Shown here: positions 300 to 38,317 of the stretch, piece by piece | How positions within the stretch are numbered: position 1 is the first letter of the stretch | Layout of the letters: every line of letters starts with the position of its first letter | IMG/VR virus record: IMGVR_UViG_3300001460_000004 | Coordinates: 1-64,000 of that record | Length of the DNA: 64,000 nucleotides | Reading direction: 5' to 3' (one strand) | Position numbers and translations under genes: made by a program | The notes under the pieces: generated by a model | Database searches by the model: none | What the model saw: only the letters and a program-made list of their open reading frames with translations | What the model was told of the DNA's origin: nothing

Positions 300-809
300 T
301 TGATGACTGTTATTATAGATAAAGCAAGATACTTTGCAACTGCGGCACACGCCGCAGTTGGACAAGTAAGAAAATATGATGGTGCACCTTACATTGTTCA
401 CCCTCAGAGAGTTGCTGATACTGTTAAGCAATATGGTGGCACTGAACAAATGATTGCCGCTGCATACTTGCATGATGTTGTAGAGGACACAAATGTTGAT
501 ATGGATACTATCACTGGCATGTTCGGCAGTGTTGTTGCAAGTCTTGTTAAAGACCTTACAGATGTCAGTGTTGCTAGTGATGGTAACAGAGAAGCACGTA
601 AAGCCATTGACAGGCAACATACCGCAGACGCTAGTGCCGATGCACAGTTCATAAAATGTGCAGACATTATTGACAACGCTGCAGACATTGCTGATAACGA
701 TCCTAGCTTCTGGAAAGTTTATCAAAGAGAAATGTCACTATTGTTGGATGAAATGGTCCGTGTTAAAGGTACTGACATATACATGAAAGCATTGGCAAAT
801 ATTGGTTGA
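300..809 (+). CDS. HD-domain small alarmone hydrolase (Mesh1/SpoT-hydrolase-like)
   Basis: RKYDGAPYIVHP, AAYLHDVVEDT, LTD and KCADIIDN match RSH hydrolase motifs; no synthetase domain. Confidence 0.85.
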   Translation: MMTVIIDKARYFATAAHAAVGQVRKYDGAPYIVHPQRVADTVKQYGGTEQMIAAAYLHDVVEDTNVDMDTITGMFGSVVASLVKDLTDVSVASDGNREARKAIDRQHTADASADAQFIKCADIIDNAADIADNDPSFWKVYQREMSLLLDEMVRVKGTDIYMKALANIG

Positions 810-847
810 CATATTTGCCAATGTATGCTATATTATTAATATAAATA
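806..847 (+). promoter_or_regulatory. sigma70-type promoter plus T4-type late promoter
   Basis: TTGACA(806-811)-N17-TATATT(829-834) with extended TG; TATAAATA at 840-847. Confidence 0.7.
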
Positions 848-864
848 CTTGACGAGGATATAAA

Positions 865-1344
865 ATGAAAAATATATTTTACATAACAGCTCTTGCAGTA
901 GCATTAGGTGGAACTGTAGCCCAGGCAAATCAAACTAGTCCTGTTACGAATACTCACGTGAAGGATTTTTACAGAACTGAACAAATTCCAGTTCCGGTTA
1001 CACAGCGTATTTGCCGAGAAGTGCAGGTACCAACATACTACAATCAACAAGGAAATAACAACAACACTGCTAACACTATTGTTGGTGCACTCATTGGTGG
1101 AGCACTTGGTAATCAGGTAGGCGGCGGCAGTGGCAAAGATGCAATGACTGTTTTAGGTGCAATTGTTGGAGCAGATGTAGCTCGTAATAATACTAGACGA
1201 AATAATAATGTAGCTGGGTATCAAACCCAAACACAATGCACTAACGAAACAACATACAATTATAATACACAAACAGTGTATGACTATAGTATTATTACGT
1301 TTACACAAGATAACCAAACTCATAGGGTTAGATTTATTAAGTAA
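865..1344 (+). CDS. secreted glycine-zipper 2TM protein
   Basis: Signal peptide; GALIGGALGNQVGGGSGKDAMTVLGAIVG glycine zipper. Confidence 0.8.
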   Translation: MKNIFYITALAVALGGTVAQANQTSPVTNTHVKDFYRTEQIPVPVTQRICREVQVPTYYNQQGNNNNTANTIVGALIGGALGNQVGGGSGKDAMTVLGAIVGADVARNNTRRNNNVAGYQTQTQCTNETTYNYNTQTVYDYSIITFTQDNQTHRVRFIK

Positions 1345-1355
1345 TTTAGAAAGGC

Positions 1356-1748
1356 ATGAAAATCATGCTACATTTAAATAGAATATTAATAGTTTTTACG
1401 CTAGTGGCGTTTTCACTAGCGTATGTTAGTATGGCAAATGCACAGGAAGAAAATACAGCAAAACAATTTTATGCTAGCCAACCGTGCGATAATGCTGTAA
1501 CCATATTTAAAACCATTACACAATATAAAGAAAAATTATTATTCCAAGGGTTAGGACAACAATTTACATTGCCTAGTGGACAACTATTTTATGGAAAAAT
1601 GATGTTTTTTACTAATCAAGAGACTGGTAGTTTTACTATTGTTTCTGTATATCCAGATGGTGTTGCATGTATGGTTATGTCTGGAAAAGAATTTGAACCT
1701 TACATGGGTGAACAGCCGTATGATAAGGAACCTAGGTCAAAGGGGTGA
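1356..1748 (+). CDS. hypothetical secreted protein
   Basis: Signal peptide ending ANA; operon context. Confidence 0.6.
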   Translation: MKIMLHLNRILIVFTLVAFSLAYVSMANAQEENTAKQFYASQPCDNAVTIFKTITQYKEKLLFQGLGQQFTLPSGQLFYGKMMFFTNQETGSFTIVSVYPDGVACMVMSGKEFEPYMGEQPYDKEPRSKG

Positions 1749-1814
1749 AGTGTTATGGAAGCACGGGAGATTCCAAATCTTCAAGCTGGGGTTCGACTCC
1801 CTGCACCTCTGCCA
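1741..1814 (+). tRNA. trnW: tRNA-Trp(CCA)
   Basis: Acceptor AGGGGTG/CACCTCT, discriminator G, encoded CCA; anticodon stem GGAGA/TCTTC with loop TTCCAAA; T-loop GTTCGAC. Confidence 0.9.
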
Positions 1815-1829
1815 ACATAAATAATAATA

Positions 1830-2153: not shown

Positions 2154-2154
2154 T

Positions 2155-2352
2155 TTGTTTAGTAAAAAATGTAAATTACATTTAGAAGAAGTTGGTGAGA
2201 CACGATGGCAACATTTTAAACATGCTTGCTGGGTGTCTTGGCAACTTGAGAAGGCGGCATACGCATGTTTTATTCATGCGTTTGCACCACGCTGGTTCAC
2301 TACATATGCTAGTGACAAATGCAAAGAAGTATTAGACGTTAGGAAAAATTGA
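2155..2352 (+). CDS. small conserved protein (DUF6356-like)
   Basis: HLEEVGETRWQHF...IHAFAPRWFTTYASD pattern. Confidence 0.6.
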   Translation: MFSKKCKLHLEEVGETRWQHFKHACWVSWQLEKAAYACFIHAFAPRWFTTYASDKCKEVLDVRKN

Positions 2353-3020
2353 TGACAGTAAAACTAATAAGTCACAGTATGGCGTCAAAAGAACTTTTTG
2401 ATACTGACAGTAGTCTGCGTGATGCACAAGGGCTAATTGCGTTTTGTGCAAGAGTAAGTAACCCAACCAACCAAATGAACAGTGATACTAGTGAAAAACT
2501 TATTAAATATCTAATTAAACATGCACACTGGTCACCACTTGAAATGGTAAGTGCTTGTTTAGAGATTAATACAACACGTGATATTGCACATCAAATTGTT
2601 AGACATCGATCATTTGCATTCCAGGAATTTAGTCAGCGTTATGCAGATCCTAAAGACCAAGGTGAGCTATTTGAGTACAGCGAAGCACGTTTACAGGATA
2701 CTAAAAATAGACAAAACAGCATTGAAACAGATGATCGCGAATTACAAATGTGGTGGGATGCTCAACAAAAGTTTATTGCCGAAGCTGCAAAAAGCATTTA
2801 TGATAATGCTATTAGCAAAGGTCTAGCTAAAGAACAAGCACGTAAAGTACTACCCGAAGGTCTTACCAAAACACGATTGTATATGAATGGCACAATACGT
2901 AGTTGGGTTCATTATATTGAACTACGTGGCGCAAATGGTACACAAAAGGAACACATGGAAGTTGCACATGCTTGTGCAAAAGTAATTGCTGAGATATTTC
3001 CATTAGCCTCTGACATATAA
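2349..3020 (+). CDS. thyX: flavin-dependent thymidylate synthase
   Basis: HWSPLE and the RHRSFAFQEFSQRY ThyX motif; EQARKVLP. Confidence 0.97.
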   Translation: MMTVKLISHSMASKELFDTDSSLRDAQGLIAFCARVSNPTNQMNSDTSEKLIKYLIKHAHWSPLEMVSACLEINTTRDIAHQIVRHRSFAFQEFSQRYADPKDQGELFEYSEARLQDTKNRQNSIETDDRELQMWWDAQQKFIAEAAKSIYDNAISKGLAKEQARKVLPEGLTKTRLYMNGTIRSWVHYIELRGANGTQKEHMEVAHACAKVIAEIFPLASDI

Positions 3021-3042
3021 TTACCAAGTAAATTATTAAGTT

Positions 3043-3078
3043 AATTACGCATAATTTATTTTTGTGCGTAATTTTTTT
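3043..3078 (+). terminator. rho-independent terminator
   Basis: AATTACGCA...TGCGTAATT stem followed by a T-run after thyX. Confidence 0.65.
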
Positions 3079-3929: not shown

Positions 3930-4493
3930 ATGAATATAGGCTTATCCCAACGGATATTGCATTATAACAACACAGCGTATGATTGCTTAGAACATGGATG
4001 GCACAGTCTATTAAGCAATCATACGCTTTTTTCAATCCCAAACATACTAGAAGTTGATCACAAAGAAACTGTAAGAGCATGTGATTTAATTGTGTTTACA
4101 GGAGGGGATGCCAGTGCAATGCGAACCATTACCGAAACACGATTGCTTACAGAATGCTACCAACAGAATACTGCTGTACTTGGTGTTTGCCATGGAGCAT
4201 TGTTTATCAATCAGTTAGAAGGTGGAGCCAATACCGAATGTGAAAACCACAGTGGAACACAGCACTCAGTAACACTAGATGGTGCAAAACAAATGGTAAA
4301 CAGTTATCACTCCTTTGCAATTGAACAATTAGCATCAAAATTGATACCAACTGGATGGGCAGATGATAAAAGCATAGAATCATTTAAACATCAAGCATTG
4401 AATGTGTGGGGGTTGATTTGGCACCCTGAAAGAATGAAGCAACCCGTTTTACCAATGGACCTAAGGAGGTTTTTAAATGAACGGAATGATTAA
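3930..4493 (+). CDS. class I glutamine amidotransferase / peptidase C26-like
   Basis: TGG, GVCHG nucleophile, VNSYH, WHPE. Confidence 0.9.
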   Translation: MNIGLSQRILHYNNTAYDCLEHGWHSLLSNHTLFSIPNILEVDHKETVRACDLIVFTGGDASAMRTITETRLLTECYQQNTAVLGVCHGALFINQLEGGANTECENHSGTQHSVTLDGAKQMVNSYHSFAIEQLASKLIPTGWADDKSIESFKHQALNVWGLIWHPERMKQPVLPMDLRRFLNERND

Positions 4494-5797: not shown

Positions 5798-5807
5798 GTA
5801 TTTCGTA

Positions 5808-5897
5808 GGACAGTTGGCTGAGAGGTTTAAAGCACCGGTTTACTAAACCGACGAAGGTTAACGCCTTCCCAGGGTTCGAATCCCTGACTGTCCGCCA
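5808..5897 (+). tRNA. trnS: tRNA-Ser with anticodon ACT
   Basis: GGACAGT/ACTGTCC acceptor, G73, CCA; long variable arm GAAGG/CCTTC; anticodon loop TTACTAA. Confidence 0.85.
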
Positions 5898-9721: not shown

Positions 9722-9750
9722 TTGACTAATCGTATATAATCGTATATAAT
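9722..9750 (+). promoter_or_regulatory. sigma70-type promoter
   Basis: TTGACT-N17-TATAAT; contains a 10-bp tandem duplication CGTATATAAT. Confidence 0.75.
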
Positions 9751-9774: not shown

Positions 9775-10194
9775 ATGTCACAAGTAGACTTAAACAAGTA
9801 CAAAGATTTTGTAAAAGAAGTAACCAGCGACGAATCACTATCAAGTATGCAGATGTATAATCGTATTATTGAAATTGAAACAACTGAAAGTGCTGCAAAA
9901 GTAAACATGGCGCAACTAATGACTGGTGCTATTGGCATTAGTGCAGAAGGTGGCGAGTTTATGGAAATTGTAAAGAAGTGTGTATTCCAAGGCAAGCCCA
10001 TGGACAAAGATACACAGTATCATGCCATGCGTGAACTTGGTGACATCATGTGGTACTGGATGAACAGTTGCAGTGCATTGGGCATTGATCCCAATGATGT
10101 CATTGCAGAGAATGTTAAAAAACTTGAGAAACGTTACCCAGGCGGAAGTTTTGATCCATACTATTCAGAAAACAGAAAAGAAGGCGATATCTAA
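9775..10194 (+). CDS. mazG: MazG-like NTP pyrophosphohydrolase
   Basis: EGGEFMEIVKK, ELGDIMWY, NVKKLEKRYP. Confidence 0.9.
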   Translation: MSQVDLNKYKDFVKEVTSDESLSSMQMYNRIIEIETTESAAKVNMAQLMTGAIGISAEGGEFMEIVKKCVFQGKPMDKDTQYHAMRELGDIMWYWMNSCSALGIDPNDVIAENVKKLEKRYPGGSFDPYYSENRKEGDI

Positions 10195-14584: not shown

Positions 14585-14613
14585 TTGACATTGCACGTTA
14601 AACGTGTTATATT
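14585..14613 (+). promoter_or_regulatory. sigma70-type promoter
   Basis: TTGACA-N17-TATATT with extended TG. Confidence 0.75.
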
Positions 14614-14638: not shown

Positions 14639-14875
14639 ATGTCAAATGTCACTCATAATAATTTAATTAACGCTGTTGGAAATGCATACGATGCAGCTAT
14701 TTTATTAGCAAAACGAACACGTGATTTAAAAAATGGGTCAAATTCTTTACTTGAATACACAGAATTTGATACTCATCGGATTGTGGCTACACGTGAAATT
14801 GAACAGGGTATTATTACTATGCAATATTTTTACGAACAGAATAACAGTGACCTACTCGAAGATGAAATGTTTTAA
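14639..14875 (+). CDS. rpoZ: RNA polymerase omega subunit homolog
   Basis: VT....NAVGNAYDAAILLAKRTRDL..G....A.REIEQG aligns with the omega pattern (VT.....GNRFDLVLVAARRARQ..G..ALREIEEG); AGGA RBS. Confidence 0.7.
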   Translation: MSNVTHNNLINAVGNAYDAAILLAKRTRDLKNGSNSLLEYTEFDTHRIVATREIEQGIITMQYFYEQNNSDLLEDEMF

Positions 14876-14952: not shown

Positions 14953-15174
14953 ATGGTTGTTGCCAAAAGCATGGAAAGATTAACGAATGAAGATTTAAAG
15001 TATCTCGAAGTATTACTTGGTAGGGAATTTGCAACTGAAAGCGATAGATGTAAATCTTGGCAACAAAAAAACAAATACGACAAGCCTTTTGGAAAACAAA
15101 ATCAAATATTAAATTGTTTAAATGCAATTAGAGATTGCCGAAGAGTTAAAGAAATGCTGGACGCCAAATGGTAA
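14953..15174 (+). CDS. hypothetical protein
   Basis: AAGGA RBS; TAAATA upstream. Confidence 0.55.
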   Translation: MVVAKSMERLTNEDLKYLEVLLGREFATESDRCKSWQQKNKYDKPFGKQNQILNCLNAIRDCRRVKEMLDAKW

Positions 15175-15193
15175 AAACTACAAAAAATTTTTC

Positions 15194-15224
15194 TTGACAT
15201 CTTGAACAATTTATGTTATAAATA
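15194..15224 (+). promoter_or_regulatory. overlapping sigma70 and late promoter for the tmRNA
   Basis: TTGACA(15194)-N17-TATAAATA(15217-15224). Confidence 0.75.
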
Positions 15225-15228
15225 ACAT

Positions 15229-15540
15229 TGTAACGTTGAAGCAATTCAAACGCTATACAGGACTCGGGGGCAGTACCCGACGCCTCCACCATAAACACAT
15301 CTAGACTGGTTTTTATATCTGATCAGATAGATGCATTGACAACTTAGGTGTGTTTATGATGGGGGCGAACTAGGATCGACTGGTGGTTAATAGAGTTAGT
15401 GGAGTTATCCGGATCTAAGCACGGTTATCGCGAAGAAAACTTATAATTGCAAATGACAATTATGCGCCAGCAATGGCAATTGCAGCCTAATTAGGTATGC
15501 GGGGTATGGGTTCCACCTAGCAACAGAACGGGCCTGCTAC
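15229..15540 (+). ncRNA. ssrA: two-piece (circularly permuted) tmRNA, alphaproteobacterial type; tag ANDNYAPAMAIAA
   Basis: Acceptor piece ends CGCCTCCACCA (15291) with T-arm GGGGCAGTACCC; intervening hairpin ATAAACACATCTA/TAGGTGTGTTTAT; coding piece starts GGGGGCGAA (15361) giving G3.U70; tag ORF 15449-15490. Outer ends approximate. Confidence 0.93.
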
Positions 15541-15561
15541 AATTTTACACACCGTAAACGG

Positions 15562-15590
15562 TTGACTTTCCACCTTTTCTATGCTATATA
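15562..15590 (+). promoter_or_regulatory. sigma70-type promoter
   Basis: TTGACT-N17-TATATA with extended TG. Confidence 0.6.
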
Positions 15591-16841: not shown

Positions 16842-17285
16842 ATGAATAAATCAATATTAATAGTTATGATTGTAACATTTTTTGCTACTATGTTTGTACA
16901 AGCTGCGAATGCAGAAGATATAACTATTGAAATGCTTAACAAGCGTGATGACGGTGCTAAAATGGTATTCAGTGAAGATATTGCAAGAATTGACGTTGGT
17001 GATACTATTACATGGGTACCAACTGCAAAAGGACACAATGTACATTTTACTGCGGGTCCGGACGGATGGGATATTCCTAAGAAGTCAAAGAACAACAAAG
17101 AAGTTGAAATTACATTTGACACACCTGGCGTATACTTTTATCAGTGTACACCACACAAAGGCATGGGCATGATTGCTCTTGTTGTTGTAGGAGACGACAC
17201 ATCAAATGCAGATACAATTATGAAAGCAAGCAAAGCCAAAGGCAAAAGCAAAAAGAAACTTAAAGGATTACTTGAAGAACTATGA
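16842..17285 (+). CDS. pseudoazurin (type I blue copper protein)
   Basis: Signal peptide; MLNK...MVF...GDTITW...GHN; CTPHKGMGM copper ligands. Confidence 0.92.
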   Translation: MNKSILIVMIVTFFATMFVQAANAEDITIEMLNKRDDGAKMVFSEDIARIDVGDTITWVPTAKGHNVHFTAGPDGWDIPKKSKNNKEVEITFDTPGVYFYQCTPHKGMGMIALVVVGDDTSNADTIMKASKAKGKSKKKLKGLLEEL

Positions 17286-22010: not shown

Positions 22011-23203
22011 AAATCATAACGGCTAATAATAAATGCTTTACCCGGACATCTCTTAGAGATAAAATTAATCAATACAAAAAAGAATTAAAATCCAAACCAT
22101 ACGTTAATATGTTAAGCAAAGAATGGGAAGACCACTTGGCCGTGTACACTGCATGGCAAGAAGTAGGTGGTACGGTATTAATTAATAATCCACTCAACCC
22201 CCTAGACTTTCAAACAAGAACGTTAGAAAATATGGATCGGTTAAGCCCCAAAGATGCTATATGCTTTCTAACTAGTGGCACCACTGGGCTTAATAAAATT
22301 GTAGTTAACAAAGAAAAACAATTATTACATGCAGCTCGAGTTGTGCAAAGCATGCCTGGATGGGATCCAGATGATCCGCTTGATTATGTTAGCACAATGC
22401 CAGCGTTTACTAGTGGCTTTTGGCACATTGTATTAGCTCCAGCAGTTATGGTGAATAAAACTTGTACCATGATTACTCCTGCTACTAATCCTACTGGCTT
22501 AGGAAATGTACTAATGACATCAACTGGGGCATTAGAACAATTTAAACTGCAACATCCAACACTTAATTTTCACGGATACAAATATGTAAATGCCGGAGCA
22601 AGTCAAGTTTTACCAAAGCATGCAGATATTGCATTTGATCGAGGTGCTGAAAATTTTTACATCACATACGGAATGAGTGAAACAACATCTCCTTCATTAA
22701 CTCGTGTTACTAACATTAGAGATAAAAATGTTGACTGTATGGATTTTAAACCTATTGAGGGAAGCCCATACGAAATAAAACTAGTTGATGGTGAGTTATG
22801 GGTGCGTGGAGATGGTGTATGCGAAAATGCCGCAGACTTTAATAGCGAAGATGGTTGGTTTAAAACAAATGATTACTTTGATCATGTAACCGATGACTTA
22901 GTTAGATTTAACGGTCGTGCAAGTGACTATGTACAAATGAATGGATTTAAAGCAAGTTTACTAGTGATAGAAAACGTTATTGCAGAAAGTGATTGTATTA
23001 ACGGTGAAGTGCTAGCTGTAAAACACAACCGACTAGGAAGCGACTATATTGAGCTCAAACACACAGATCCTAATATAAAGATAACCATAGCACAAATACA
23101 AGACCTATTACAAGACAAATTACCCAAATGTAATATTCCAAGACAATTTACATTTGTTGACTCAATACCAAAAAACCCATTGGGTAAGAAAATGCGCCGA
23201 TGA
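22007..23203 (+). CDS. acyl-adenylate-forming (AMP-binding) ligase
   Basis: TSGTTGLNK, YGMSET, GWFKTND, FNGR, IPKNPLGK. Confidence 0.9.
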   Translation: MKIITANNKCFTRTSLRDKINQYKKELKSKPYVNMLSKEWEDHLAVYTAWQEVGGTVLINNPLNPLDFQTRTLENMDRLSPKDAICFLTSGTTGLNKIVVNKEKQLLHAARVVQSMPGWDPDDPLDYVSTMPAFTSGFWHIVLAPAVMVNKTCTMITPATNPTGLGNVLMTSTGALEQFKLQHPTLNFHGYKYVNAGASQVLPKHADIAFDRGAENFYITYGMSETTSPSLTRVTNIRDKNVDCMDFKPIEGSPYEIKLVDGELWVRGDGVCENAADFNSEDGWFKTNDYFDHVTDDLVRFNGRASDYVQMNGFKASLLVIENVIAESDCINGEVLAVKHNRLGSDYIELKHTDPNIKITIAQIQDLLQDKLPKCNIPRQFTFVDSIPKNPLGKKMRR

Positions 23204-23898
23204 AAAAATTAATATTTCTTGGCACTAGCTCAGGCATCTCAATATTTGAAGAAGCTGCCGAAGCTATGGGATACGAAGTTTACGGTGTTATGGACGGAGA
23301 CTATACAAAAGGTGATGAATATTGGGGTATTCCAGTTATTAACAGCGAAACAGTATTTGATAATCCAAAATTAGCACAGTACTACAAACAAAACTTTGTG
23401 TTCTTTAATGCTATAAATTGGTTACCAATGAACGACAAAATTTCTGTACGCAACACACAAAAACGACATAAGTTTATGCAGTTAATACAACAACACAATT
23501 TAGAGTGTATTAATATTATTGAAGAAGGTTCGTATGTTAGTACAAAATCTACAAAGTTAGGNACAAACATTTATCTTGGGCATTGGATTGCAATTGAACC
23601 TCATTGTGTTGTGGAAGATTTTGTTAGTTTGTTTGGGCACACGTTTTTAGGGCACCATACACAGGTGGGAGAAAATTCTCAAATACAACGACATGGAGAA
23701 ATGTACGGAAATGTTAGATTGGGGAAAAATTCTTATGTAGGCACCCATGCTGGCATAGTACAAGATTGTGTTGTAGGAGACAATGTATGGATACAACCAG
23801 GTATTAGAGTGTGCAGAAACGTAGAAAATAATGAAATAATTGGTGCTACTAAAAAAAGTCTAAGAAAAACAGTACCATACTATGGTACTTTTCCTTAA
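23200..23898 (+). CDS. NeuD/PglD-like left-handed beta-helix sugar acetyltransferase
   Basis: N-terminal Rossmann-like start, hexapeptide repeats, GHH. Confidence 0.8.
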   Translation: MKKLIFLGTSSGISIFEEAAEAMGYEVYGVMDGDYTKGDEYWGIPVINSETVFDNPKLAQYYKQNFVFFNAINWLPMNDKISVRNTQKRHKFMQLIQQHNLECINIIEEGSYVSTKSTKLXTNIYLGHWIAIEPHCVVEDFVSLFGHTFLGHHTQVGENSQIQRHGEMYGNVRLGKNSYVGTHAGIVQDCVVGDNVWIQPGIRVCRNVENNEIIGATKKSLRKTVPYYGTFP

Positions 23899-23916
23899 TT
23901 TTCTGACATTATCCGG

Positions 23917-23945
23917 TTGACATATGAGTAATTGTACCGTATACT
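23917..23945 (+). promoter_or_regulatory. sigma70-type promoter
   Basis: TTGACA-N17-TATACT. Confidence 0.8.
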
Positions 23946-23977
23946 ATATATATAAAGTTAGAAATTAGGAGCAACAT

Positions 23978-25075
23978 ATGTCAGAGACAAGAACAGTAAC
24001 GGCGTTAACAGCAACAAATGCAATTCAAAAGTGCTTTGCTAAAAAACGCCCTGTGTTTTTATGGGGTCCTCCCGGTATTGGTAAAAGTGAGATAGTCGAA
24101 AGCATTATCGCTAAAATGGGCGGTTTAATGATTGACTTACGTTTGGGTCAAATGGATCCAACTGATATACGAGGTATTCCTTTTTACAATAAAGAGAAAG
24201 GTGTTATGGACTGGGCACCACCTGTAGAGCTACCAAGTGAAGAACTTGCATCCCAGTTTCCCATTGTGGCTGTATTCTTTGATGAAATGAACAGTAGTGC
24301 TCCTGCTGTACAAGCTGCATCGTACCAGTTAATACTTAATCGTCGAATTGGACAATACAAATTACCCGATAATGTAGTAATGATTGCAGCTGGTAATAGA
24401 GAAAGTGACAAAGGTGTTACATATCGTATGCCTACTCCGCTTGCTAACCGTTTCGTACATTTAGAAATGCGTCCTGATTTTAATTGCTGGTTAGATTGGG
24501 CTGTACAAAACAACGAACACAAAGACGTTGTAGGTTATTTGCAATTTGCAAAACAAGACTTATATGATTTTGATCCTAAAAGCTCAAGTCGTTCTTTTGC
24601 TACACCACGTACTTGGAGTTTTGTAAGTGAACTTATTGAAGATGATGACGGTACTGATCCAAGTGGATTAACAGATCTTATTGCTGGTACGATTGGTGAA
24701 GGACTTGCTATTAAGTTTATGGCACATCGTAAGTTTGCAGGTGATCTACCAAATCCTGAGGATATCTTAGATGGTTCTGTAAAAGAACTTAAAGTAAAAG
24801 AGATCAGTGCAATGTACAGTTTAGTTGTTAGCTTGTGTTACGAGCTAAAAGCAAGTCTCGAAGATGACAGTGTTAATGATAAAAAATGGCACGAGTATGT
24901 TGATAACTTCTTTGCTTATATGATGGACAATTTTGAAACTGAAATTGTTGTTATGGGTGCAAGGATTGCATTAACTACATACGAACTACCAATGCAACCA
25001 ACTAAACTTAAAAACTTTGATCGGTTATATGAAAAATATGGCAAATATATTGTTAAGTCCAACCAGGCCGCTTAA
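23978..25075 (+). CDS. MoxR-like AAA+ ATPase
   Basis: GPPGIGKS, FFDEMN, AAGNR, LANRF, TPRTW. Confidence 0.92.
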   Translation: MSETRTVTALTATNAIQKCFAKKRPVFLWGPPGIGKSEIVESIIAKMGGLMIDLRLGQMDPTDIRGIPFYNKEKGVMDWAPPVELPSEELASQFPIVAVFFDEMNSSAPAVQAASYQLILNRRIGQYKLPDNVVMIAAGNRESDKGVTYRMPTPLANRFVHLEMRPDFNCWLDWAVQNNEHKDVVGYLQFAKQDLYDFDPKSSSRSFATPRTWSFVSELIEDDDGTDPSGLTDLIAGTIGEGLAIKFMAHRKFAGDLPNPEDILDGSVKELKVKEISAMYSLVVSLCYELKASLEDDSVNDKKWHEYVDNFFAYMMDNFETEIVVMGARIALTTYELPMQPTKLKNFDRLYEKYGKYIVKSNQAA

Positions 25076-25334
25076 TCGAGAGGGTCAACTAAATCGTGCA
25101 ATGCAGAATCCTGAAGGAGCTGTGTTGCACACTCGTAGTTTTGACCATAACGATCAACAAAATCTAACAAGAATGATTAAAGATCTCTGTATAGAATTTG
25201 GAAGACCAAATACTGAAGACTGGGGTTTTTATTGTTTGTATGCAGGTGATGAAGTTAACTTAAAAATATGGTTCAATGATCCAAGGCTGGCTATGATGTA
25301 TGTGTTAAAGTTTGGAAATTCTAATCTTCAATGA
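25017..25334 (+). CDS. hypothetical protein (start uncertain)
   Basis: ORF between the AAA and vWA genes. Confidence 0.5.
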   Translation: MIGYMKNMANILLSPTRPLNREGQLNRAMQNPEGAVLHTRSFDHNDQQNLTRMIKDLCIEFGRPNTEDWGFYCLYAGDEVNLKIWFNDPRLAMMYVLKFGNSNLQ

Positions 25335-25687
25335 AATACGAAATACAAAAACTTGATGGTAGATTTACATTCAAACGTCATTTTGATTATGCAATTGCGT
25401 TTGAAAACAGAATGGCACATGATAAAGGTCCATTGTATTGGGCTAAATGTCATGCATGGTTAACCGAAACATATGGCCCAAGTTTAGAAATGAGCATATG
25501 GAATGAAATTAAAACTTGGGATGAAATGCGATACATGGTTAGCCTTGGGCCGGACCCAGAGGTTGCAGAACTATGTAATCCTGATTGGGCTTGGAGCATA
25601 GCAGTTCCAGCAAAAATACGTATATATCTAAAAAATCATGAAGTTTTGACATGGTTTTCTTTGAAGTTTAGTCAGAATATTGATTAA
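25331..25687 (+). CDS. hypothetical protein
   Basis: Coupled ORF. Confidence 0.6.
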   Translation: MKYEIQKLDGRFTFKRHFDYAIAFENRMAHDKGPLYWAKCHAWLTETYGPSLEMSIWNEIKTWDEMRYMVSLGPDPEVAELCNPDWAWSIAVPAKIRIYLKNHEVLTWFSLKFSQNID

Positions 25688-25693
25688 ATATGG

Positions 25694-25722
25694 TTGACAA
25701 TACATATTCATTGTGCTATAAT
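25694..25722 (+). promoter_or_regulatory. consensus sigma70 promoter
   Basis: TTGACA-N17-TATAAT with extended TG. Confidence 0.85.
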
Positions 25723-25753
25723 ATATGTATAAATTAGAAAAGAGGATATAGGA

Positions 25754-27031
25754 ATGAGTCTAGAAACTGATGCTAAATCTAATAATAAACCTCTTAAATA
25801 TCTACTAGGTGATACTGACCCTAAACTTGATGCAGAAATGCGTGAAAAACTTATTACAGCACGAGTTGGGTTGTTGCTAAACAATCAATTTTTTGGTAAC
25901 TTGGCTACACGACTTAAATTAGTAAATGCCGATAAGTGGTGTACTACTGCCGCAACTGATGGGAGACATTTTTATTACAACAGTCGATTCATTGAAATGT
26001 TGTCTCAAAAAGAAGTTGAATTTTTGTTTGGGCACGAAGTATTGCATGTAGCATATGATCATTTTGGTCGTAAAGGTGAACGAGATCACCAACTTTGGAA
26101 TGTTGCTTGCGACTATGCTGTAAATGGAGATCTCAAGTGGCACAAGGTAGGACAATTTATTACAACAGTNCCGGCATTGTATGATCCTAAATACAAAGAT
26201 ATTGCAAGCGAAGAAATATATGATGAACTGTACGAAAATGCAGAAAAAATTAATATTGATGATTTAATTGACAAACTATTAGATGAACACATTGATGCCG
26301 ATGATGCAAATGAAGAAGGTGCAGGACCTGGTGAAGAAGGACACGATACTAGTAAGCCAATTCCGTTAACCAAAGAACAAAAAGAACAAATTAAAGATGA
26401 AATGAAAGAAGCATTAATTAATGCGGCTAGTACAAGTGAAGCTGGAAAAGTACCAGCTGGCATACAACGTATTATTAAAGATCTCACTGAGCCTCAAATG
26501 GACTTTAGAGAATTGTTGCAAATGAATATTCAAAGTTTAATTAAAAATGATTTTACATTTGCAAAAGTAAGTCGCAAAGGTTGGCATTTTGATGCAGTAC
26601 TACCTGGTATGAACAACGACGAAGCAATTGATATTGCAATTGGATTGGATCTAAGTGGTAGTATTACTAACGAAATGGGCCGAGATATGATAAGTGAAAT
26701 ATACGGCATTACACAACAATTTGGTACATTTAAAATACATTTGTTTACATTTGACACAGAAGTATATAACTATCAAGTTTTTGATAGTGACAGTGGTCAA
26801 GATATTAGCGAATACGAACTTAAAGGAGGTGGCGGCACTTCATATGAATGCATATTTAACTTCCTTAAAGAAGAGGGCATTGAACCTCAAAAATTAGTAG
26901 TGTTTACAGATGGATATCCGTGGAATACATGGGGTGATCCAAACTACTGCGAAACATTATGGATTATACATAGCAACCCTAATCCAGAACCAGAGTTTGG
27001 TGATTGGGTTCCATATCAACTAGCGGCATGA
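25754..27031 (+). CDS. zincin metallopeptidase plus vWA domain protein (DUF2201-like)
   Basis: TAATDG, HEVLH, WNVACD; MIDAS DLSGS, GGGGT, FTDG. Confidence 0.9.
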   Translation: MSLETDAKSNNKPLKYLLGDTDPKLDAEMREKLITARVGLLLNNQFFGNLATRLKLVNADKWCTTAATDGRHFYYNSRFIEMLSQKEVEFLFGHEVLHVAYDHFGRKGERDHQLWNVACDYAVNGDLKWHKVGQFITTXPALYDPKYKDIASEEIYDELYENAEKINIDDLIDKLLDEHIDADDANEEGAGPGEEGHDTSKPIPLTKEQKEQIKDEMKEALINAASTSEAGKVPAGIQRIIKDLTEPQMDFRELLQMNIQSLIKNDFTFAKVSRKGWHFDAVLPGMNNDEAIDIAIGLDLSGSITNEMGRDMISEIYGITQQFGTFKIHLFTFDTEVYNYQVFDSDSGQDISEYELKGGGGTSYECIFNFLKEEGIEPQKLVVFTDGYPWNTWGDPNYCETLWIIHSNPNPEPEFGDWVPYQLAA

Positions 27032-27069
27032 TTATTTTACATGCCCTGTAATTGACGGTAAATATTAGT

Positions 27070-27315
27070 ATGACAGAAGAAACAAAAAATCCAGATGATG
27101 TTACTCTTAACGTTCAAGATTTGACTAACATTAAAACTATTATTGAAATTGCTCAATCTCGCGGTGCATTTGAAGCACAAGAATTAACCACTGTTGGTCA
27201 GACATTTGATAAGTTGACTAACTTTTTAAACGTTGTTGTTGCAGCGGCACAAGTAAAAGCTGACGAGAATAACACTAATGAAGAAGAAACTGTAGGAGAC
27301 CAAAAAGATGATTAA
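27070..27315 (+). CDS. hypothetical phage protein
   Basis: QDL..IIE.AQSRGAF..EL..VG; ATG 5 nt after TAAATA. Confidence 0.7.
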   Translation: MTEETKNPDDVTLNVQDLTNIKTIIEIAQSRGAFEAQELTTVGQTFDKLTNFLNVVVAAAQVKADENNTNEEETVGDQKDD

Positions 27316-28000
27316 ACACGTTGGAAGACACGGTGATCGAAAGGTTGCTATTGTTTTTAGAGAAGTCCCAAATGAAGCTCATATGGCACTAGTAGTTTAT
27401 ACGGAAACAATGGCTGTTGGCATGCATGATCGACTAATGCAAGTTATTGAAACACCAGAAGCACAATCTGCTGAAAGTTTAGCTGATGTAATGAATCGTC
27501 AATTGTTTTCAGATGGACGTAATATGTTACAAACATGCCATGGTGAAGGCATGCTTAAAAAAGTTCAAACAAAAGAAATTACAGTAATTGCTAATTCAAA
27601 AAGTAGCGTTATTCTATCAGAACTTAATAGTATTATTACTGAAATGAAAGCTGGTGAGGATGCTGTTACTCGGCTACAACAGTTAGATAATCAATCAGGA
27701 ATGACTGGTACAGTAGGTCAGCAAGACGACTTTGGTCGTGAAATTGGTGCTCCGGCACTACCGGTTAATAGTGCTGAAATTGCTGGCAGTGATGCTGCAA
27801 AAGCTCAAGCGTTAGACGATGCTAGTATTAGTCATGACTTGCTAGCTCAAAGCAAACGCATGGAAGCTGAAGCCAAGGCACTAATAGCCGAAAGTAAACG
27901 CTTAGCCAAAGATGCTGCTGCAATGAAGCCCAAAGTCGTAAAGACTCGTGCTAAAACTACACGCACTAAAAAGGCTAAAACCACTGATGGAGCTACCTGA
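27308..28000 (+). CDS. hypothetical phage protein with basic C-terminal tail
   Basis: AGGAG RBS; coupled ORF. Confidence 0.7.
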   Translation: MIKHVGRHGDRKVAIVFREVPNEAHMALVVYTETMAVGMHDRLMQVIETPEAQSAESLADVMNRQLFSDGRNMLQTCHGEGMLKKVQTKEITVIANSKSSVILSELNSIITEMKAGEDAVTRLQQLDNQSGMTGTVGQQDDFGREIGAPALPVNSAEIAGSDAAKAQALDDASISHDLLAQSKRMEAEAKALIAESKRLAKDAAAMKPKVVKTRAKTTRTKKAKTTDGAT

Positions 28001-28289
28001 AAATCAAATCGAAAAATGGGAAAAGATTGTTAACAGTGTTGACAAAGAAATTATCCCTGTAGAAGTAATTCGAAAAGTAATTTTTAAACTCACTAACGGT
28101 AAACAAAAAACAATTAATATGGAACGTCTGCGGAAACGTGGCGCTAATATTGATGAGCTATACGAAATCTTAGATACTTTTGTTGCTGATAATGATGTTA
28201 ATATAAAGAATATGGATTTTGTTTTAGACATACCTGCTATAGCTGAGATGCTACAAGAAGAATCAGACGAAATACTCAAAAATATTTAG
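27987..28289 (+). CDS. hypothetical protein
   Basis: Start reassigned to the MELPEN ATG. Confidence 0.65.
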   Translation: MELPENQIEKWEKIVNSVDKEIIPVEVIRKVIFKLTNGKQKTINMERLRKRGANIDELYEILDTFVADNDVNIKNMDFVLDIPAIAEMLQEESDEILKNI

Positions 28290-28297
28290 GAAATCAA

Positions 28298-29308
28298 ATG
28301 AGTGAAGATAGAGACGTTATTCCTACAGTTTTAGTAACAGGTGGATTAGGGTTAATTGGGCATCATGTTGTAAGTCAACTTGAAGAACAAGGCTATGATG
28401 TAGTTGTTACTGACACTAAGACCAACTACAACGGACTTATACCTAATGACGAACTCAACTATTTGATTGGCGAGCGTTCAAAGAAAATAAGAACGCAAGA
28501 AATATACAATGTTGATATTTGCGACTCTGGTCGTATGGAAGCTATTTTTAACAAATATCGTCCCGAAACAATTGTGCATTTAGCAAGTTTTCCAAGACAA
28601 AAAGTAGTAAATGCTAATCCTCAAAGTGGTAGTAGAACTATGAGTGAAGGATTACTTAACTTATTGGAACTTAGTGCCAAGTATAGTAGCAAACGATTTG
28701 TTTACATAAGCAGTAGTATGGTTTATGGTAGTTTTGAAGATGATGTTAAAGAAGATGCCGCAATGAATCCACAAGGACAATACGGTATTATGAAACTAGC
28801 TGGTGAATGGTTAGTTAAAGATTACACACGTAAATGTGGTATTGAGCATGTTATTATTCGCCCAAGTGCAGTTTATGGTCCTTTGGATGTACAAGATCGA
28901 GTTGTAAGTAAGTTTATGATCTCGGCAATGCAAGGCAAAGAGCTTAGTGTAAACGGTAAAAGTGAAACATTAGATTTTACGTATGTAACAGATGCAGCCG
29001 ACGGTGTTGTTGCAGCAGCAACTATTCCGCAAGCAGCCAACAATACATATAACATTACCAAAAGTCATAGTTGGACATTATATGATGCAGCCGAGTTAGC
29101 TGTAAAAATTGCTGGTAACGGAACAATAAATGTAAAAGACAAAGATATGGATTTTCCCAGCCGAGGTGCGTTAAATATTGATTCGGCTAGAGCTGATTTA
29201 GGATTTGACCCTAAAGTTGACTTAGAAGAAGGGTTTGAACGCTACTATGAATGGTTTAAAGATTCCGTTTACTGGTCTGAAAAAGCAGTACCTCAATCTC
29301 AAGACTGA
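28298..29308 (+). CDS. NAD-dependent NDP-sugar epimerase/dehydratase (extended SDR)
   Basis: VTGGLGLIG, SSSMVYG, YGIMK, RPSAVYGP, DFTYV. Confidence 0.93.
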   Translation: MSEDRDVIPTVLVTGGLGLIGHHVVSQLEEQGYDVVVTDTKTNYNGLIPNDELNYLIGERSKKIRTQEIYNVDICDSGRMEAIFNKYRPETIVHLASFPRQKVVNANPQSGSRTMSEGLLNLLELSAKYSSKRFVYISSSMVYGSFEDDVKEDAAMNPQGQYGIMKLAGEWLVKDYTRKCGIEHVIIRPSAVYGPLDVQDRVVSKFMISAMQGKELSVNGKSETLDFTYVTDAADGVVAAATIPQAANNTYNITKSHSWTLYDAAELAVKIAGNGTINVKDKDMDFPSRGALNIDSARADLGFDPKVDLEEGFERYYEWFKDSVYWSEKAVPQSQD

Positions 29309-30347
29309 AATACTCGACACAAGTGACGCTGTGTATCATAGCGGAAAACTGATTGACGGTAATCAAACTATTGAATTTGAAAATTGGCTTGCAAAGAAAA
29401 ATAATGTTCGTTATGCAATCACAATGCATAGCGGTACGCAAGCACTAGAAACTATTGCAAGATTTAATAAGAACAAACTTATTGTTGAAACTCCTCTAGT
29501 ATTACTTCCAACATTTACTTATATTGCAACTGCAAATGCATTTTTAACCGCTGGTTGGAAAGTTCAATTTGCTGATTGCAACAGCCACGGCGTGAGTACA
29601 TATACCAAAAATGAAATTGATGAAAGCATTGATGCCGCTGTATTGGTTGGAATTTTTGGCAAACAAGTCAACGATCCTTGGGAAGAACGTATACACAATA
29701 AAAATTGGAAACTTTCCAATACTGAATTAATAGAAGATGGTGCACAACATTGGTTATCAGCTGGATGTAAACGAGTTGCTGATACTGCTATTAGTTTTGA
29801 TCCAATGAAAAACTTTAACAGTTATGGCAACGGTGGTGCAGTTGTAACAAATGATATTGAATTGTACAACTTTTCTAATCACTTTCGTACAAACGGGAAA
29901 GACTGGCAACAAAGTTCACAGTACGGAACCAACAGTCGTATGAGTGAAATTGATTGTGCTCAAATGTTAGTAAAGAGTCGTTACATTGACAAATGGCAAA
30001 CTAAACGTCAAGAAATAGCAGAATATTGGATTGAAAGATTTACTGAAGCCCGGATTGAATGTCTAATAACACGAAGTGAATTAAAAAATCACGCTATAAG
30101 TAAATTTGTTATTAATATTGAAAATAGAAATGAAATAAAACGTAAATTGGATACAAGGCAAATAGAAACAAAGATACATTACCAAACACCTTTACACGAA
30201 AGATTTCCAGAGTTTAAAGGTCCTAAAGGAATGTGTACAGCAGGTGCGTTAGCTAGACATACGTTATCATTACCAATGTATCCAGAACTTACTGATCTTG
30301 AAGTTGAGTATATTGCTGATCAAGTAATTTCTTGTGTAGCCGGGTAA
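29247..30347 (+). CDS. DegT/DnrJ/EryC1/StrS PLP-dependent sugar aminotransferase
   Basis: SGTQAL, TYIAT, EDGAQ, SFDPMKN (catalytic Lys), LSLPMYP. Confidence 0.92.
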   Translation: MNGLKIPFTGLKKQYLNLKTEILDTSDAVYHSGKLIDGNQTIEFENWLAKKNNVRYAITMHSGTQALETIARFNKNKLIVETPLVLLPTFTYIATANAFLTAGWKVQFADCNSHGVSTYTKNEIDESIDAAVLVGIFGKQVNDPWEERIHNKNWKLSNTELIEDGAQHWLSAGCKRVADTAISFDPMKNFNSYGNGGAVVTNDIELYNFSNHFRTNGKDWQQSSQYGTNSRMSEIDCAQMLVKSRYIDKWQTKRQEIAEYWIERFTEARIECLITRSELKNHAISKFVINIENRNEIKRKLDTRQIETKIHYQTPLHERFPEFKGPKGMCTAGALARHTLSLPMYPELTDLEVEYIADQVISCVAG

Positions 30348-36223: not shown

Positions 36224-36235
36224 TAGTATTTTCTT

Positions 36236-36478
36236 TTAGTCCATGTCTACGACCCACTCGTTACCTCGCCATTCAGCAGTAACGGGATCTCCAAGATTGA
36301 TATCTTTAATTCGTACTTTAAGAATTGGAGCCATTCGATGATCTAGCTCATGTCCAATTATATGAGCTTCTTTATACCCTAGGTCAGATCCGTAACCACT
36401 ATTGACTACTTTAATCTTCATAGATTCTGAACCTTCATTAAGGCCTGCATTTCGTTTGAGTACCTCTAAGTCTGACAT
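36236..36478 (-). CDS. small late protein, possible internal head protein
   Basis: LKRNAGLNE leader; TAAATA at 36507-36502; AAGGA RBS. Confidence 0.6.
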   Translation of the reverse strand: MSDLEVLKRNAGLNEGSESMKIKVVNSGYGSDLGYKEAHIIGHELDHRMAPILKVRIKDINLGDPVTAEWRGNEWVVDMD

Positions 36479-36504
36479 TGTTATTTCCTTTGTTAATATA
36501 TTAT

Positions 36505-38010
36505 TTATGTAAAAACCTTAACGCCATACATTGTAGCAAATTCTTGAGCATCTGTTAAGTCATTTACTATGGGTTTGCCTTTAATATTTAAACTTGTGTT
36601 CAGTAACATTGGGCATCCTGTTTTTCGGTGCCACGCTTCGAGTAGTCTTCGTATGCCACTGCCGTCTGGAGCAACTGTTTGTACTCTACTTGTTCCGTCT
36701 GCGTGACAGATTGCAGGATACAAGTCTGGATGCTTACAGGTTGAGGTATACTGCATATAGTTGTTGTAGTATCCTTCAAAGTTATCACTTGCATATTCTT
36801 CTAGTATAACTGGAGCAAAAGGTCTAAATTCTTGTCTTCGTTTAATTCTGTTGACTCTGTCTTTGATGTCATGGCCACGAGGATCAGCAAGCAAACTACG
36901 ATTACCAAAAGCCCGCGGGCCAAACTCTGCTTTGCCGTTAGCAACTCCGCAGATGCCAGTCTCGGCAAGTTCCTTGACTGTTTGTAAAACTGGGTATTCT
37001 CCTTTTATGTCATATCCTAAAAATGCATGATCCATCTTCATGTGTTGTTTTTTATGTGCTAACACTGCTCCTACTGCACTGCCAGCATCACCAGGATTAG
37101 GCATAATCCATACTCGATCAAAGTAATCATATGCTATGCTATTAGCACTGCAATTTAATGCACATCCTCCCATTAAAACTAAGTTTTTACTGTCTACATT
37201 TCGTTGCATCCATATCAATGCTTTTCTAAACATATCTTCATACAGTTTTTGCGTTGCTGCGGCAATATCAAACATATCTTGTTCTGTATCAAGATCAGGA
37301 CGCCAGCGTTGACATCCTCTATGTAAATTTTCCCAAAACAGTGTAGCCGGTTCTTCGATATAAAATCTAGTAGCAACAGTACTAATCAGATCCCATCCTT
37401 CAACAACAAAATGTTCTTTTATATCATTGTATAATCTATTAGGATCGCCATACGCCGCCATACCCATAAGAATGTATTCATCTTCGTTTGGTTTTAATCC
37501 TATACGTTGAGTCATTGCACTGTACCAAAGTCCTATGCTGTGTGGATAACCTTGTGTGTAAACACGTTTTAGTTCCGTGTCTTTGGCTTCCCAGACTGTA
37601 AAGGTTTCAAATTCGCCAATGCTGTCAATACATATGACTGTAGCATCTCTAAAGTTACTAGTATAATAACCAGCGGCAGCATGACTAAGATGATGATCAA
37701 CACACTTAATAGGAGCATCGAGTTTGTAGCTTTTAAGATAACTTTTAATATTGTTTTCATTATACCTCCAACCCTGGCCTGCCCAAAGCTGTCTCAGTGT
37801 TTTTTTAAAAGGACGTTCATACCAAATGATTTCATCCGGTTCTCCCCATTGTTTAGCATAATCAATCAACGCTGTGTTTAAATGTGCATCATTCTTAACA
37901 CCGCTGAAACGTTCGCTGTGACTAGCAAATTCTAATCCGTCGTTGTTGAATACTGCTAGTGCAGCATCGTGGCTGTTGGCACTAATGCCCCAAGTTATTT
38001 TACTATGCAT
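36505..38010 (-). CDS. O-carbamoyltransferase (NodU/CmcH/TobZ family)
   Basis: HDAA, HHLSHAA, GGCALN, GDAGSAVG, EFGPRAFGNRS, RPFAP, LNTSLN. Confidence 0.95.
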   Translation of the reverse strand: MHSKITWGISANSHDAALAVFNNDGLEFASHSERFSGVKNDAHLNTALIDYAKQWGEPDEIIWYERPFKKTLRQLWAGQGWRYNENNIKSYLKSYKLDAPIKCVDHHLSHAAAGYYTSNFRDATVICIDSIGEFETFTVWEAKDTELKRVYTQGYPHSIGLWYSAMTQRIGLKPNEDEYILMGMAAYGDPNRLYNDIKEHFVVEGWDLISTVATRFYIEEPATLFWENLHRGCQRWRPDLDTEQDMFDIAAATQKLYEDMFRKALIWMQRNVDSKNLVLMGGCALNCSANSIAYDYFDRVWIMPNPGDAGSAVGAVLAHKKQHMKMDHAFLGYDIKGEYPVLQTVKELAETGICGVANGKAEFGPRAFGNRSLLADPRGHDIKDRVNRIKRRQEFRPFAPVILEEYASDNFEGYYNNYMQYTSTCKHPDLYPAICHADGTSRVQTVAPDGSGIRRLLEAWHRKTGCPMLLNTSLNIKGKPIVNDLTDAQEFATMYGVKVFT

Positions 38011-38110
38011 TGTCTATTGAATGTTGAAACATACGATAAGGTATACTACCTATTCCCATATAAGCAGTCCAAAATACTATGTTATATAAAATAATTTCTA
38101 TTTCTTCCAT
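38003..38110 (-). CDS. 35-aa membrane peptide (not in ORF track)
   Basis: MEEIEIILYNIVFWTAYMGIGSIPYRMFQHSIDNA; AGGAGG RBS; fills the operon gap. Confidence 0.55.
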   Translation of the reverse strand: MEEIEIILYNIVFWTAYMGIGSIPYRMFQHSIDNA

Positions 38111-38317
38111 TTACAACCTCCTTATTATTACTGTGCCATATCTTGGCCAGGATATTTCGCAACCAATTGTTTCGAGTGCATGTGTTACTAATTCAATCAT
38201 CTTATGGCTATTTCCGCATATAATAGTTAATGGTAACGCATGTTGATTTAAATACACAAAGTTTTCTACTTCGCGGTCAACTTGATAATGTCTTATGCCG
38301 TGCAAGTCTAATTGCAT
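38111..38317 (-). CDS. stand-alone Smr-domain protein
   Basis: LDLHG...IICGNS. Confidence 0.7.
   Translation of the reverse strand: MQLDLHGIRHYQVDREVENFVYLNQHALPLTIICGNSHKMIELVTHALETIGCEISWPRYGTVIIRRL

Follow-up and report, generated by a model that had tools for sequence, protein, structure and literature searches.

A phage-encoded RNA polymerase omega homologue beside a permuted tmRNA in uncultured jumbo phages, probably not part of a wider anti-starvation toolkit

Do six dispersed features of one phage amount to a single device for keeping a starved host at work? The question is raised by the first 64 kb (64,000 nucleotides; here, the window) of IMG/VR record IMGVR_UViG_3300001460_000004, a 230,036-bp contig of 36% GC from a marine metagenome. 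The original prediction had singled out a small alarmone hydrolase, a tRNA-Ser(ACU), a MazG-family protein, a homologue of the omega subunit of RNA polymerase (RpoZ), a transfer-messenger RNA (tmRNA) and a stand-alone Smr domain, and had grouped them as one toolkit against the stringent response and ribosome stalling. All six features are present, at or within ~40 bases of the positions originally given. We favor, with a probability of roughly 60%, the reading that an uncultured jumbo phage carries them as accessory functions independent of each other rather than as a single system, and that an omega-tmRNA module among them is conserved.

The contig was placed by its large terminase subunit, encoded at G000:144051-145613 (G000 being the window's contig). 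This protein is 70 to 80% identical to its homologs in the best 80 of at least 599 matching IMG/VR stretches. Against isolates, it is 52% identical to the terminase of Pseudomonas phage PA5oct and 49 to 53% identical to those of Sinorhizobium phage Phosso and Agrobacterium phage Atu_ph07. These relationships identify the phage as an uncultured member of the T4-related jumbo myoviruses. A megablast search with 20 kb against deposited phages gave no match, and a distant blastn search recovered just a short AAA-ATPase stretch, so that no close DNA relative was found in that collection. The omega region recurs in identical form on contigs assembled from JGI, ENA, and Logan samples, and many marine, seawater, and brine DNA runs hold the window stretch; together these findings indicate that the virus is real and recurrent.

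Co-occurrence, the check suggested with the original prediction, was assessed across seven near-complete relatives (≥90% complete by CheckV, 316 to 365 kb, two with terminal repeats). Two of these, G001 and G002, were found via the terminase; the other five, G017 to G021, were found via omega, and their terminases were then confirmed at 57 to 77% identity. Omega and a permuted tmRNA were each present in 7/7, MazG was present in 5/7, and neither an above-cut-off HD_4 domain like that of the hydrolase nor a Smr-like protein was found in any. Among 17 records of any completeness, omega and the tmRNA occurred in exactly the same five. The two are 0.3 kb apart in the window and 1.1 to 1.6 kb apart in G001, G002, G017, and G019. 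The claim of one anti-starvation toolkit failed this comparison: only omega and the tmRNA travel together, and the hydrolase and the Smr protein, missing from all seven relatives, are lineage-specific additions. The six features are also unclustered, as had been noted at the outset. Interspersed with them are accessory genes that bear no relation to them (ThyX, an amidotransferase, a cupin protein, a copper protein, DoxX, a sugar-nucleotide modification cluster, a carbamoyltransferase, and radical S-adenosylmethionine [SAM] enzymes), which makes their grouping a post hoc choice that carries no statistical signal. A phage with ~400 genes is ample room in which to assemble a theme after the fact. 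The best-supported arrangement has three layers: an expression island of omega with the tmRNA and tRNAs, a MazG protein common in the clade, and the lineage-specific hydrolase, mini-Smr protein, and tRNA-Ser(ACU).

The omega homolog (positions 14639 to 14875, plus strand, 78 residues) passes its family models narrowly, with 27.4 bits for Pfam RNA_pol_Rpb6 PF01192 (cut-off, 26) and 25.6 bits for NCBIfam rpoZ TIGR00690 (cut-off, 23.6). Omega chains in the PDB were matched at E values down to 4e-8. When its AlphaFold model (predicted local distance difference test score [pLDDT], 80.9) was compared with the PDB by Foldseek, the top 50 matches were all omega chains in RNA polymerase complexes (template modeling [TM] scores of 0.53 to 0.80, normalized to the model). 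As originally noted, the protein lacks the MAR motif and starts MSNVT where Escherichia coli omega has MARVT. It is the most divergent of the phage omegas, with several conserved core positions changed, and its C-terminal tail is acidic. No beta or beta-prime subunit was found in the three genomes searched (the window's contig and two near-complete relatives), which leaves host RNA polymerase as the only possible partner. We infer that the phage omega docks on host beta-prime. Once docked, it could either preserve the assembly of the host polymerase or retune the enzyme during transcription of the stable RNAs and early genes of the phage. Between omega and the tmRNA lies an open reading frame (ORF) of 73 residues (positions 14953 to 15174, plus strand), which always adjoins them in copies of this same phage and has no match in Pfam, PHROGs, or NCBIfam.

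To define the wider family, an alignment of five phage omegas was used as the query, and 80 IMG/VR loci were retrieved, one of which proved to be E. coli DNA. The remaining 79 loci, themselves a minimum, yielded at least 57 distinct omega proteins, or at least 58 with that of the window. With the window omega as query, a word-indexed protein search returned the query alone, and an exhaustive protein search returned 11 weak relatives, mostly with the bacterial-type MARVT start. A tRNA gene lies within 5 kb of omega at 73 of the 79 loci, and 57 of them have at least five (median, eight); ARAGORN detected a permuted tmRNA at 17/79. No protein-coding gene accompanied omega at more than 24 of 58 loci, and none of these recurrent neighbors is in the window. 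An omega homolog next to a permuted tmRNA, in or beside a tRNA island, is found throughout a clade of ~316- to 365-kb phages.

No genuine cultured phage with omega was found among ~50,000 deposited phage genomes queried with both the window omega and a typical phage omega. The matches obtained there were rejected as Salmonella or E. coli DNA filed among phages. Phage-filed records with rpoZ of the enterobacterial or Acinetobacter type, which look like host DNA or contamination, are MG065691.1, MG065686.1, OR845831.1, OR851528.1, AFYI01000003.1, AGRM01000003.1, CAKLQH020000003.1, and CAKLQF020000004.1. Full-text literature searches likewise gave no earlier report of a phage-encoded omega, and the "moraphage" paper is silent on omega. 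As far as these searches reach, the phage omega family, carried on at least 79 metagenomic phage contigs that include complete 350-kb genomes, is previously unreported.

Could omega be a functionless passenger, a piece of host DNA that came along with tRNA or tmRNA genes? Its place is always within or close to the tRNA/tmRNA island, which consists of host-like genes, and the window copy is barely above the family cut-offs. However, the 58 distinct sequences retain conserved core residues, and their median pairwise dN/dS is 0.09 (the pairs are non-independent and many dS values are saturated), a sign of strong purifying selection on the phage omegas. The gene is kept in complete genomes whose terminases are only 57 to 78% identical, and the window copy has a near-consensus promoter and a ribosome-binding site of its own. 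The phage proteins also share a short length and, in most, a REYL-type motif after REIE-G followed by a short basic tail, features that E. coli omega does not have. We therefore reject the idea of a dead passenger, on the basis of purifying selection, and regard it as very improbable.

The missing MAR motif had been taken as a means of making RNA polymerase less sensitive to ppGpp (guanosine tetraphosphate). Among the 58 distinct phage omegas, 38 start with MAR and six with MPR, and MSN is unique to the window; counted by locus, 13 (the same six proteins) start with MPR, mostly MPRQTS, and four start with MAKVTS. Because 38/58 keep MAR, its loss is specific to this lineage and is not a family trait. 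Residues 2 to 5 of omega contribute to holding the phosphates of ppGpp at site 1 (PMC7676912; on the MAR motif, see also PMC6416229), and E. coli lacking rpoZ, and with it site 1, shows just a modest lag after nutritional downshift (PMC7676912). The presence of omega in the clade cannot be put down to desensitization through MAR loss, and even in this phage the leverage gained that way would be weak. The idea falls for the clade and is conceivable in this lineage only, where the change may be a desensitizing twist.

The second member of the module is a permuted (two-piece) alpha-type tmRNA at positions 15190 to 15581 on the plus strand. Rfam model alpha_tmRNA RF01849 matched positions 15190 to 15538 at 132 bits (threshold, 50), tmRNA_permuted RF04321 matched at 110.7 bits (threshold, 47) from position 15230, where a start at 15229 had been predicted, and ARAGORN reported a tmRNA at 15197 to 15581 and flagged it as permuted. 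The acceptor piece ends in CCA at 15289 to 15291 and is followed by a variable intervening segment (~15292 to 15360) and by the coding piece, whose GGGGGCG at 15361 pairs with the CGCCUCC-ACCA ending at 15291, so that G3.U70 is formed. The tag ORF (15449 to 15490, with its stop) encodes ANDNYAPAMAIAA. No SmpB was found in the 230-kb contig, which is 66% complete; SmpB would have to be the host's. The phage tmRNA would be charged by host alanyl-tRNA synthetase (AlaRS), be delivered by host SmpB, and free ribosomes stalled on broken or non-stop messages. Just downstream (16842 to 17686) are genes for a plastocyanin/azurin-family copper protein and then a DoxX-family membrane protein.

In relatives, the tmRNA beside omega is of a different type. 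Seven loci (L105 to L108, L190, L191, and L194) match the beta-type model RF01850 at 84 to 155 bits, the gathering score being 84; another two, at 58 and 66 bits, do not reach it. The tags of the relatives read ANDE(V/L/Q)(Y/F)ALAA or ANDSQFALAA. An alpha-type tmRNA in the window and beta-type tmRNAs in relatives at the same locus point to a replacement to match the host, and suggest that what had to be matched was host SmpB, AlaRS, and the proteases that recognize the tag. The alpha type also suggests an alphaproteobacterial host for this marine phage.

A scan of genome collections for the tag pattern found mainly marine alphaproteobacterial tmRNAs. The closest two, L217 and L213, are 75 to 83% identical to that of the window and lie on low-GC contigs with phage-like neighbor genes: L217 is on PALK01000009.1 (labeled Rickettsiales), and L213 is in PBPT01000016.1 (G035; 335,231 bp), labeled as a Neomarinimicrobiota metagenome-assembled genome (MAG). 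These contigs were considered as hosts and rejected; with phage-like neighbors and, in the MAG, a terminase 59% identical to that of the window, they are probably mis-binned jumbo phages.

Promoter sequences were examined for evidence of shared control. Sigma-70-type promoters precede MazG (TTGACT-N17-TATAAT, 9722 to 9750) and omega (TTGACA-N17-TATATT with a TG extension, 14585 to 14613), each matching at 11/12 positions. The same pattern precedes the tmRNA (TTGACA-N17-TATAAA, immediately upstream at 15194 to 15222, found by sequence scan) and the next ORF; the promoters of MazG, omega, and the tmRNA are on the plus strand. Weaker matches to the pattern were not enriched over shuffled sequence. 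At most three of the six features share an early-promoter signature; omega and the tmRNA are each predicted to be driven by a near-consensus sigma-70 promoter of their own. The sequence that follows the -10 element in the phage promoters is AT-rich. In E. coli, AT-rich sequence at this position is not known to be associated with inhibition by ppGpp.

Several points weigh against separate accessory functions with a conserved omega-tmRNA module. Omega itself was the route to five of the seven near-complete relatives, which biases its 7/7 count and leaves only G001 and G002 as unbiased. The window's contig is only ~66% complete by CheckV, and absences in its own genome are therefore weak evidence. 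No omega was detected in G035 (335 kb) or in the L217 contig; since G035 has an alpha-type tmRNA, the pair is not obligatory. Synteny of omega and the tmRNA could come from common descent rather than from function. RNA runs have few sequence words in common with the window stretch, and in four RNA libraries contigs cover positions 15198 to 15539 only and leave omega and its neighbors uncovered. These RNA contigs are mostly 90 to 95% alike and differ in the intervening segment, so that they represent a mix of related tmRNAs, none of which can be assigned to this phage. Finally, a lineage-specific anti-stringent adaptation is possible, in which this one phage combines a MAR-less omega with an alarmone hydrolase. 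In its fullest form, a marine lineage would have rebuilt the omega-tmRNA island for a starved alphaproteobacterial host, with the MAR-less omega displacing host omega and removing site-1 control, the hydrolase lowering guanosine tetra- and pentaphosphate [(p)ppGpp] levels, and the alpha-swapped tmRNA keeping ribosomes free. We consider this scenario improbable.

The hydrolase gene (positions 300 to 809, plus strand, with the likely ATG at 303) lacks a separate promoter and comes after an ORF that is cut off by the start of the contig. Its product is a lone RelA/SpoT-type HD domain of 168 residues with no synthetase domain, and it matches Pfam HD_4 (1.3e-16, 61 bits; cut-off, 27.2) as well as phrog_990. 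Among solved structures, it is closest to two small alarmone hydrolases, Lmo0812 and Mesh1, and to the hydrolase domains of Rel/SpoT. In alignments the HP...LHDVVEDT...ADxxDN motifs (HD, ED) are intact, and the biochemical potential originally proposed for a RelA/SpoT-type site holds up at the level of sequence. The protein is 43% identical to PaSpo of Salmonella phage SSU5 over 86% of its length and 52% identical to a protein of Pseudomonas jumbo phage D6, and the family spans 238 deposited phage records. Among 17 + 5 related records, the hydrolase was seen just in this phage; G021 has one HD fragment, of 17 bits and so below the cut-off. As a lineage-specific acquisition, it could hydrolyze (p)ppGpp or its adenosine counterparts [(pp)pApp], or reverse the damage that toxic small alarmone synthetases (toxSAS) do to tRNA. 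Other genes of this early region encode the flavin-dependent thymidylate synthase ThyX (2349 to 3020) and a class I glutamine amidotransferase (3930 to 4493), and three N characters (187 and 196 to 197) lie within the ORF upstream of the hydrolase.

A rival reading has several of the features shield phage translation from abortive infection by the host rather than from starvation. On that account, the hydrolase would reverse tRNA pyrophosphorylation by toxSAS or CapRel-type toxins or degrade (pp)pApp, the tmRNA and tRNAs would offset toxins that cleave mRNA or tRNA, and MazG would clean or deplete nucleotide pools. SSU5 PaSpo, the homolog described above, has been used to neutralize toxSAS toxins (PMC9712102), and Iyer and colleagues have already tied the HD alarmone phosphodiesterase of jumbo phages to alarmone-based immunity, against which they proposed it acts (PMC7824862). 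The hydrolase and the Smr protein are patchy and lineage specific, as is typical of counter-defense genes, and the Ser(ACU) anticodon was not seen in relatives. On the other side, omega has no obvious place in such a scheme, the tmRNA and tRNA arrays are clade-wide rather than patchy, and no toxSAS or other defense system is known for the host. We regard counter-defense as possible but rather unlikely.

MazG had been placed in the toolkit, though with the caution that phage MazG proteins need not hydrolyze ppGpp. The gene (positions 9775 to 10194, plus strand) encodes a MazG-family nucleoside triphosphate pyrophosphohydrolase, with matches to Pfam MazG (32.4 bits; cut-off, 22) and phrog_229 (1e-45) and with the acidic metal-binding motifs AEGGEFMEIV and RELGDIMWY. 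It is 52.9% identical to MazG of cyanophage S-PM2 over 99% of its length and 53% identical to that of Atu_ph07. Purified S-PM2 MazG neither binds nor hydrolyzes (p)ppGpp and prefers dGTP and dCTP (PMC6850273). By analogy with this homolog, the window protein is unlikely to remove the alarmone. Common but not universal in the near-complete relatives, it may instead be a clade-common pyrophosphatase for (deoxy)nucleoside triphosphates that acts on nucleotide pools.

For the tRNA, codon supply offers a simpler account than toolkit membership. The tRNA-Ser(ACU) at 5808 to 5897 (plus strand), on which ARAGORN and Rfam (53 bits) agree, is well formed and of class II; its variable arm is long and its CCA is encoded. 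By Watson-Crick pairing it would read AGU. In the long ORFs of the phage, 53% of the serine codons are AGT, and the simplest reading is that the tRNA supplies this dominant serine codon. The anticodon is unusual: it is missing from the 740 tRNAs that surround omega in relatives, of which 24 are Ser(GCU). A tRNA-Trp(CCA) at 1741 to 1814 (plus strand; ARAGORN, Rfam 47.9 bits) had not been listed in the original prediction. A second tRNA with A34, Pro(AGG), is encoded at G000:219186-219260 and has a poor acceptor stem.

The sixth feature (positions 38111 to 38317, minus strand) is a stand-alone Smr domain by fold, 68 residues long. Profile searches gave no match in Pfam (PF01713, even at E = 10), PHROGs, NCBIfam, or PDB sequences. 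The AlphaFold model (pLDDT, 95.7) matched the Smr domains of MutS2, N4BP2, B3BP, and E. coli YdaL best (TM scores of 0.66 to 0.79), and the nearest Atlas clusters were viral Smr-domain clusters. LDLHG is invariant in nine homologs. The second motif reads IICGNS, with CGNS in place of HGxG, a motif that helps define the Smr family, and this form is invariant in the phage family. In SmrB-type collision nucleases, an N-terminal extension anchors the Smr domain to collided ribosomes. The window protein has no N- or C-terminal extension, its first strand starting at residue 2. No Smr-like protein was found in any relative tested.

The neighborhood of the Smr gene points elsewhere. Its start overlaps the stop of an upstream gene (TAATG), so that the two are translationally coupled within a minus-strand operon. 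That upstream gene (38317 to 38883, minus strand) encodes a methylthioadenosine/S-adenosylhomocysteine (MTA/SAH)-nucleosidase-like protein (Pfam PNP_UDP_1, 8e-14; NCBIfam nucleosidase models) and probably belongs with the minus-strand radical-SAM cluster farther upstream. Nothing ties the Smr protein to ribosomes, and we did not retain its proposed part in handling stalled ribosomes, given the missing extension and the operon shared with nucleosidase and radical-SAM genes. It may be a lineage-specific acquisition, a small nuclease-like domain. Across 36505 to 48220 (minus strand) lie a carbamoyltransferase (36505 to 38010), the nucleosidase, and five or six paralogous radical-SAM enzymes (40125 to 48220). 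Together these look like a biosynthetic cluster, in which the nucleosidase could clear the 5'-deoxyadenosine made by the radical-SAM enzymes.

How much, then, of the dispersed toolkit stands? As a whole, it would have the hydrolase and MazG remove (p)ppGpp, a MAR-less omega replace host omega and blunt site 1, and the tmRNA, Smr protein, and tRNA-Ser clear or prevent stalls. All of its parts exist, the hydrolase site is intact, and the window omega has S2 and N3 among the residues that coordinate the ppGpp phosphates (PMC7676912). This phage alone combines a MAR-less omega with an acquired hydrolase, and its samples are marine, a setting in which starvation is common. Against these points stand the absence of the hydrolase and Smr protein from 7/7 near-complete relatives and of MazG from 2/7, the inactivity of a close MazG homolog on (p)ppGpp, the MAR motif kept by most phage omegas, and the modest effect of losing rpoZ in E. 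coli. The Smr protein lacks the extension and sits in a radical-SAM/nucleosidase operon, and the AT-rich sequence after the -10 element is of the kind not known to be linked to ppGpp inhibition. Searches of the window's contig and of four near-complete relatives turned up neither a DksA/TraR mimic nor a RelA/SpoT synthetase. We judge a single toolkit improbable. The original prediction is partly supported: what holds is the intact hydrolase site and the tmRNA as a rescuer of stalled ribosomes, and the roles given to MazG, the MAR-less omega, tRNA-Ser, and Smr fare poorly.

Elsewhere in the window, a sugar-nucleotide or surface-modification set occupies 22007 to 30347 (an AMP-binding enzyme, a hexapeptide transferase, an NAD-dependent epimerase/dehydratase, and a DegT-type aminotransferase). 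A MoxR-like AAA ATPase and, two small ORFs later, a DUF2201 metallopeptidase-like protein with a von Willebrand factor type A-like domain are encoded within 23978 to 27031; the DUF2201 gene has a consensus promoter of its own at 25694. A single ORF of 2,452 residues fills 56335 to 63693 (minus strand), and a protein with tail-fiber-like matches is encoded just downstream on the same strand (54137 to 55531).

Host RNA polymerase is a known target of phages, which modify it or bind to it, and phage genomes are known to include genes for tRNAs, tmRNAs, and even ribosomal proteins. On the most far-reaching of the readings considered here, which we hold to be improbable, phage omegas would be a previously unrecognized way to reprogram host RNA polymerase from within the core enzyme. 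Should a phage omega enter the host core, it would provide a natural experiment on the roles of omega in assembly, sigma competition, and ppGpp site 1, which are long-standing and poorly resolved, and natural MAR, MPR, and MSN variants are available for comparison. The alpha/beta difference between tmRNAs at the same locus clearly hints that a phage tmRNA has to suit the SmpB, AlaRS, and protease machinery of its host, and tmRNA type could be of use in assigning uncultured jumbo phages to their hosts. The case also illustrates how a functional grouping that looks plausible in a phage of 400 genes can fall to a simple test of co-occurrence. Most deserving of further study are the family of phage-encoded omegas and the switch in tmRNA type.

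Five of the elements were compared with known systems. The Smr-fold protein shares the beta-alpha-beta-alpha-beta-beta fold and LDLHG motif of known Smr domains (the MutS2 C terminus, E. coli SmrA/YdaL, SmrB, N4BP2, and Cue2); unlike them, it is only 68 residues long, carries the CGNS motif, has no extension for anchoring to ribosomes or MutS, and is coupled to a nucleosidase gene. The hydrolase has the same single RelA/SpoT-type HD domain and catalytic motifs as other phage small alarmone hydrolases, namely, SSU5 PaSpo and the jumbo-phage "HD-alarmone PDEase" (PMC7824862), but in its setting it differs from them in not being common to its own relatives. MazG resembles S-PM2 MazG in its single MazG domain and EExxE...ExxD-type acidic motifs, whereas the host of the window phage is probably not a cyanobacterium, because its tmRNA is alpha-type. 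The omega homolog has the helical fold of bacterial RpoZ (TM scores of 0.72 to 0.80 to E. coli and Vibrio omega chains), and the core GN(R)-D-L...A-R-R-R and ALREIE-G are recognizable; unlike bacterial RpoZ, it is phage encoded and short (78 residues), with MSN for MAR, GNA for GNR, and ATREIE for ALREIE. Finally, the tmRNA shares the acceptor-before-coding order, the G3.U70 pair, and an ANDN...AA tag with alphaproteobacterial two-piece tmRNAs (RF01849), and it differs from them in sitting in a phage beside omega and in a tag that ends AMAIAA rather than ALAA.

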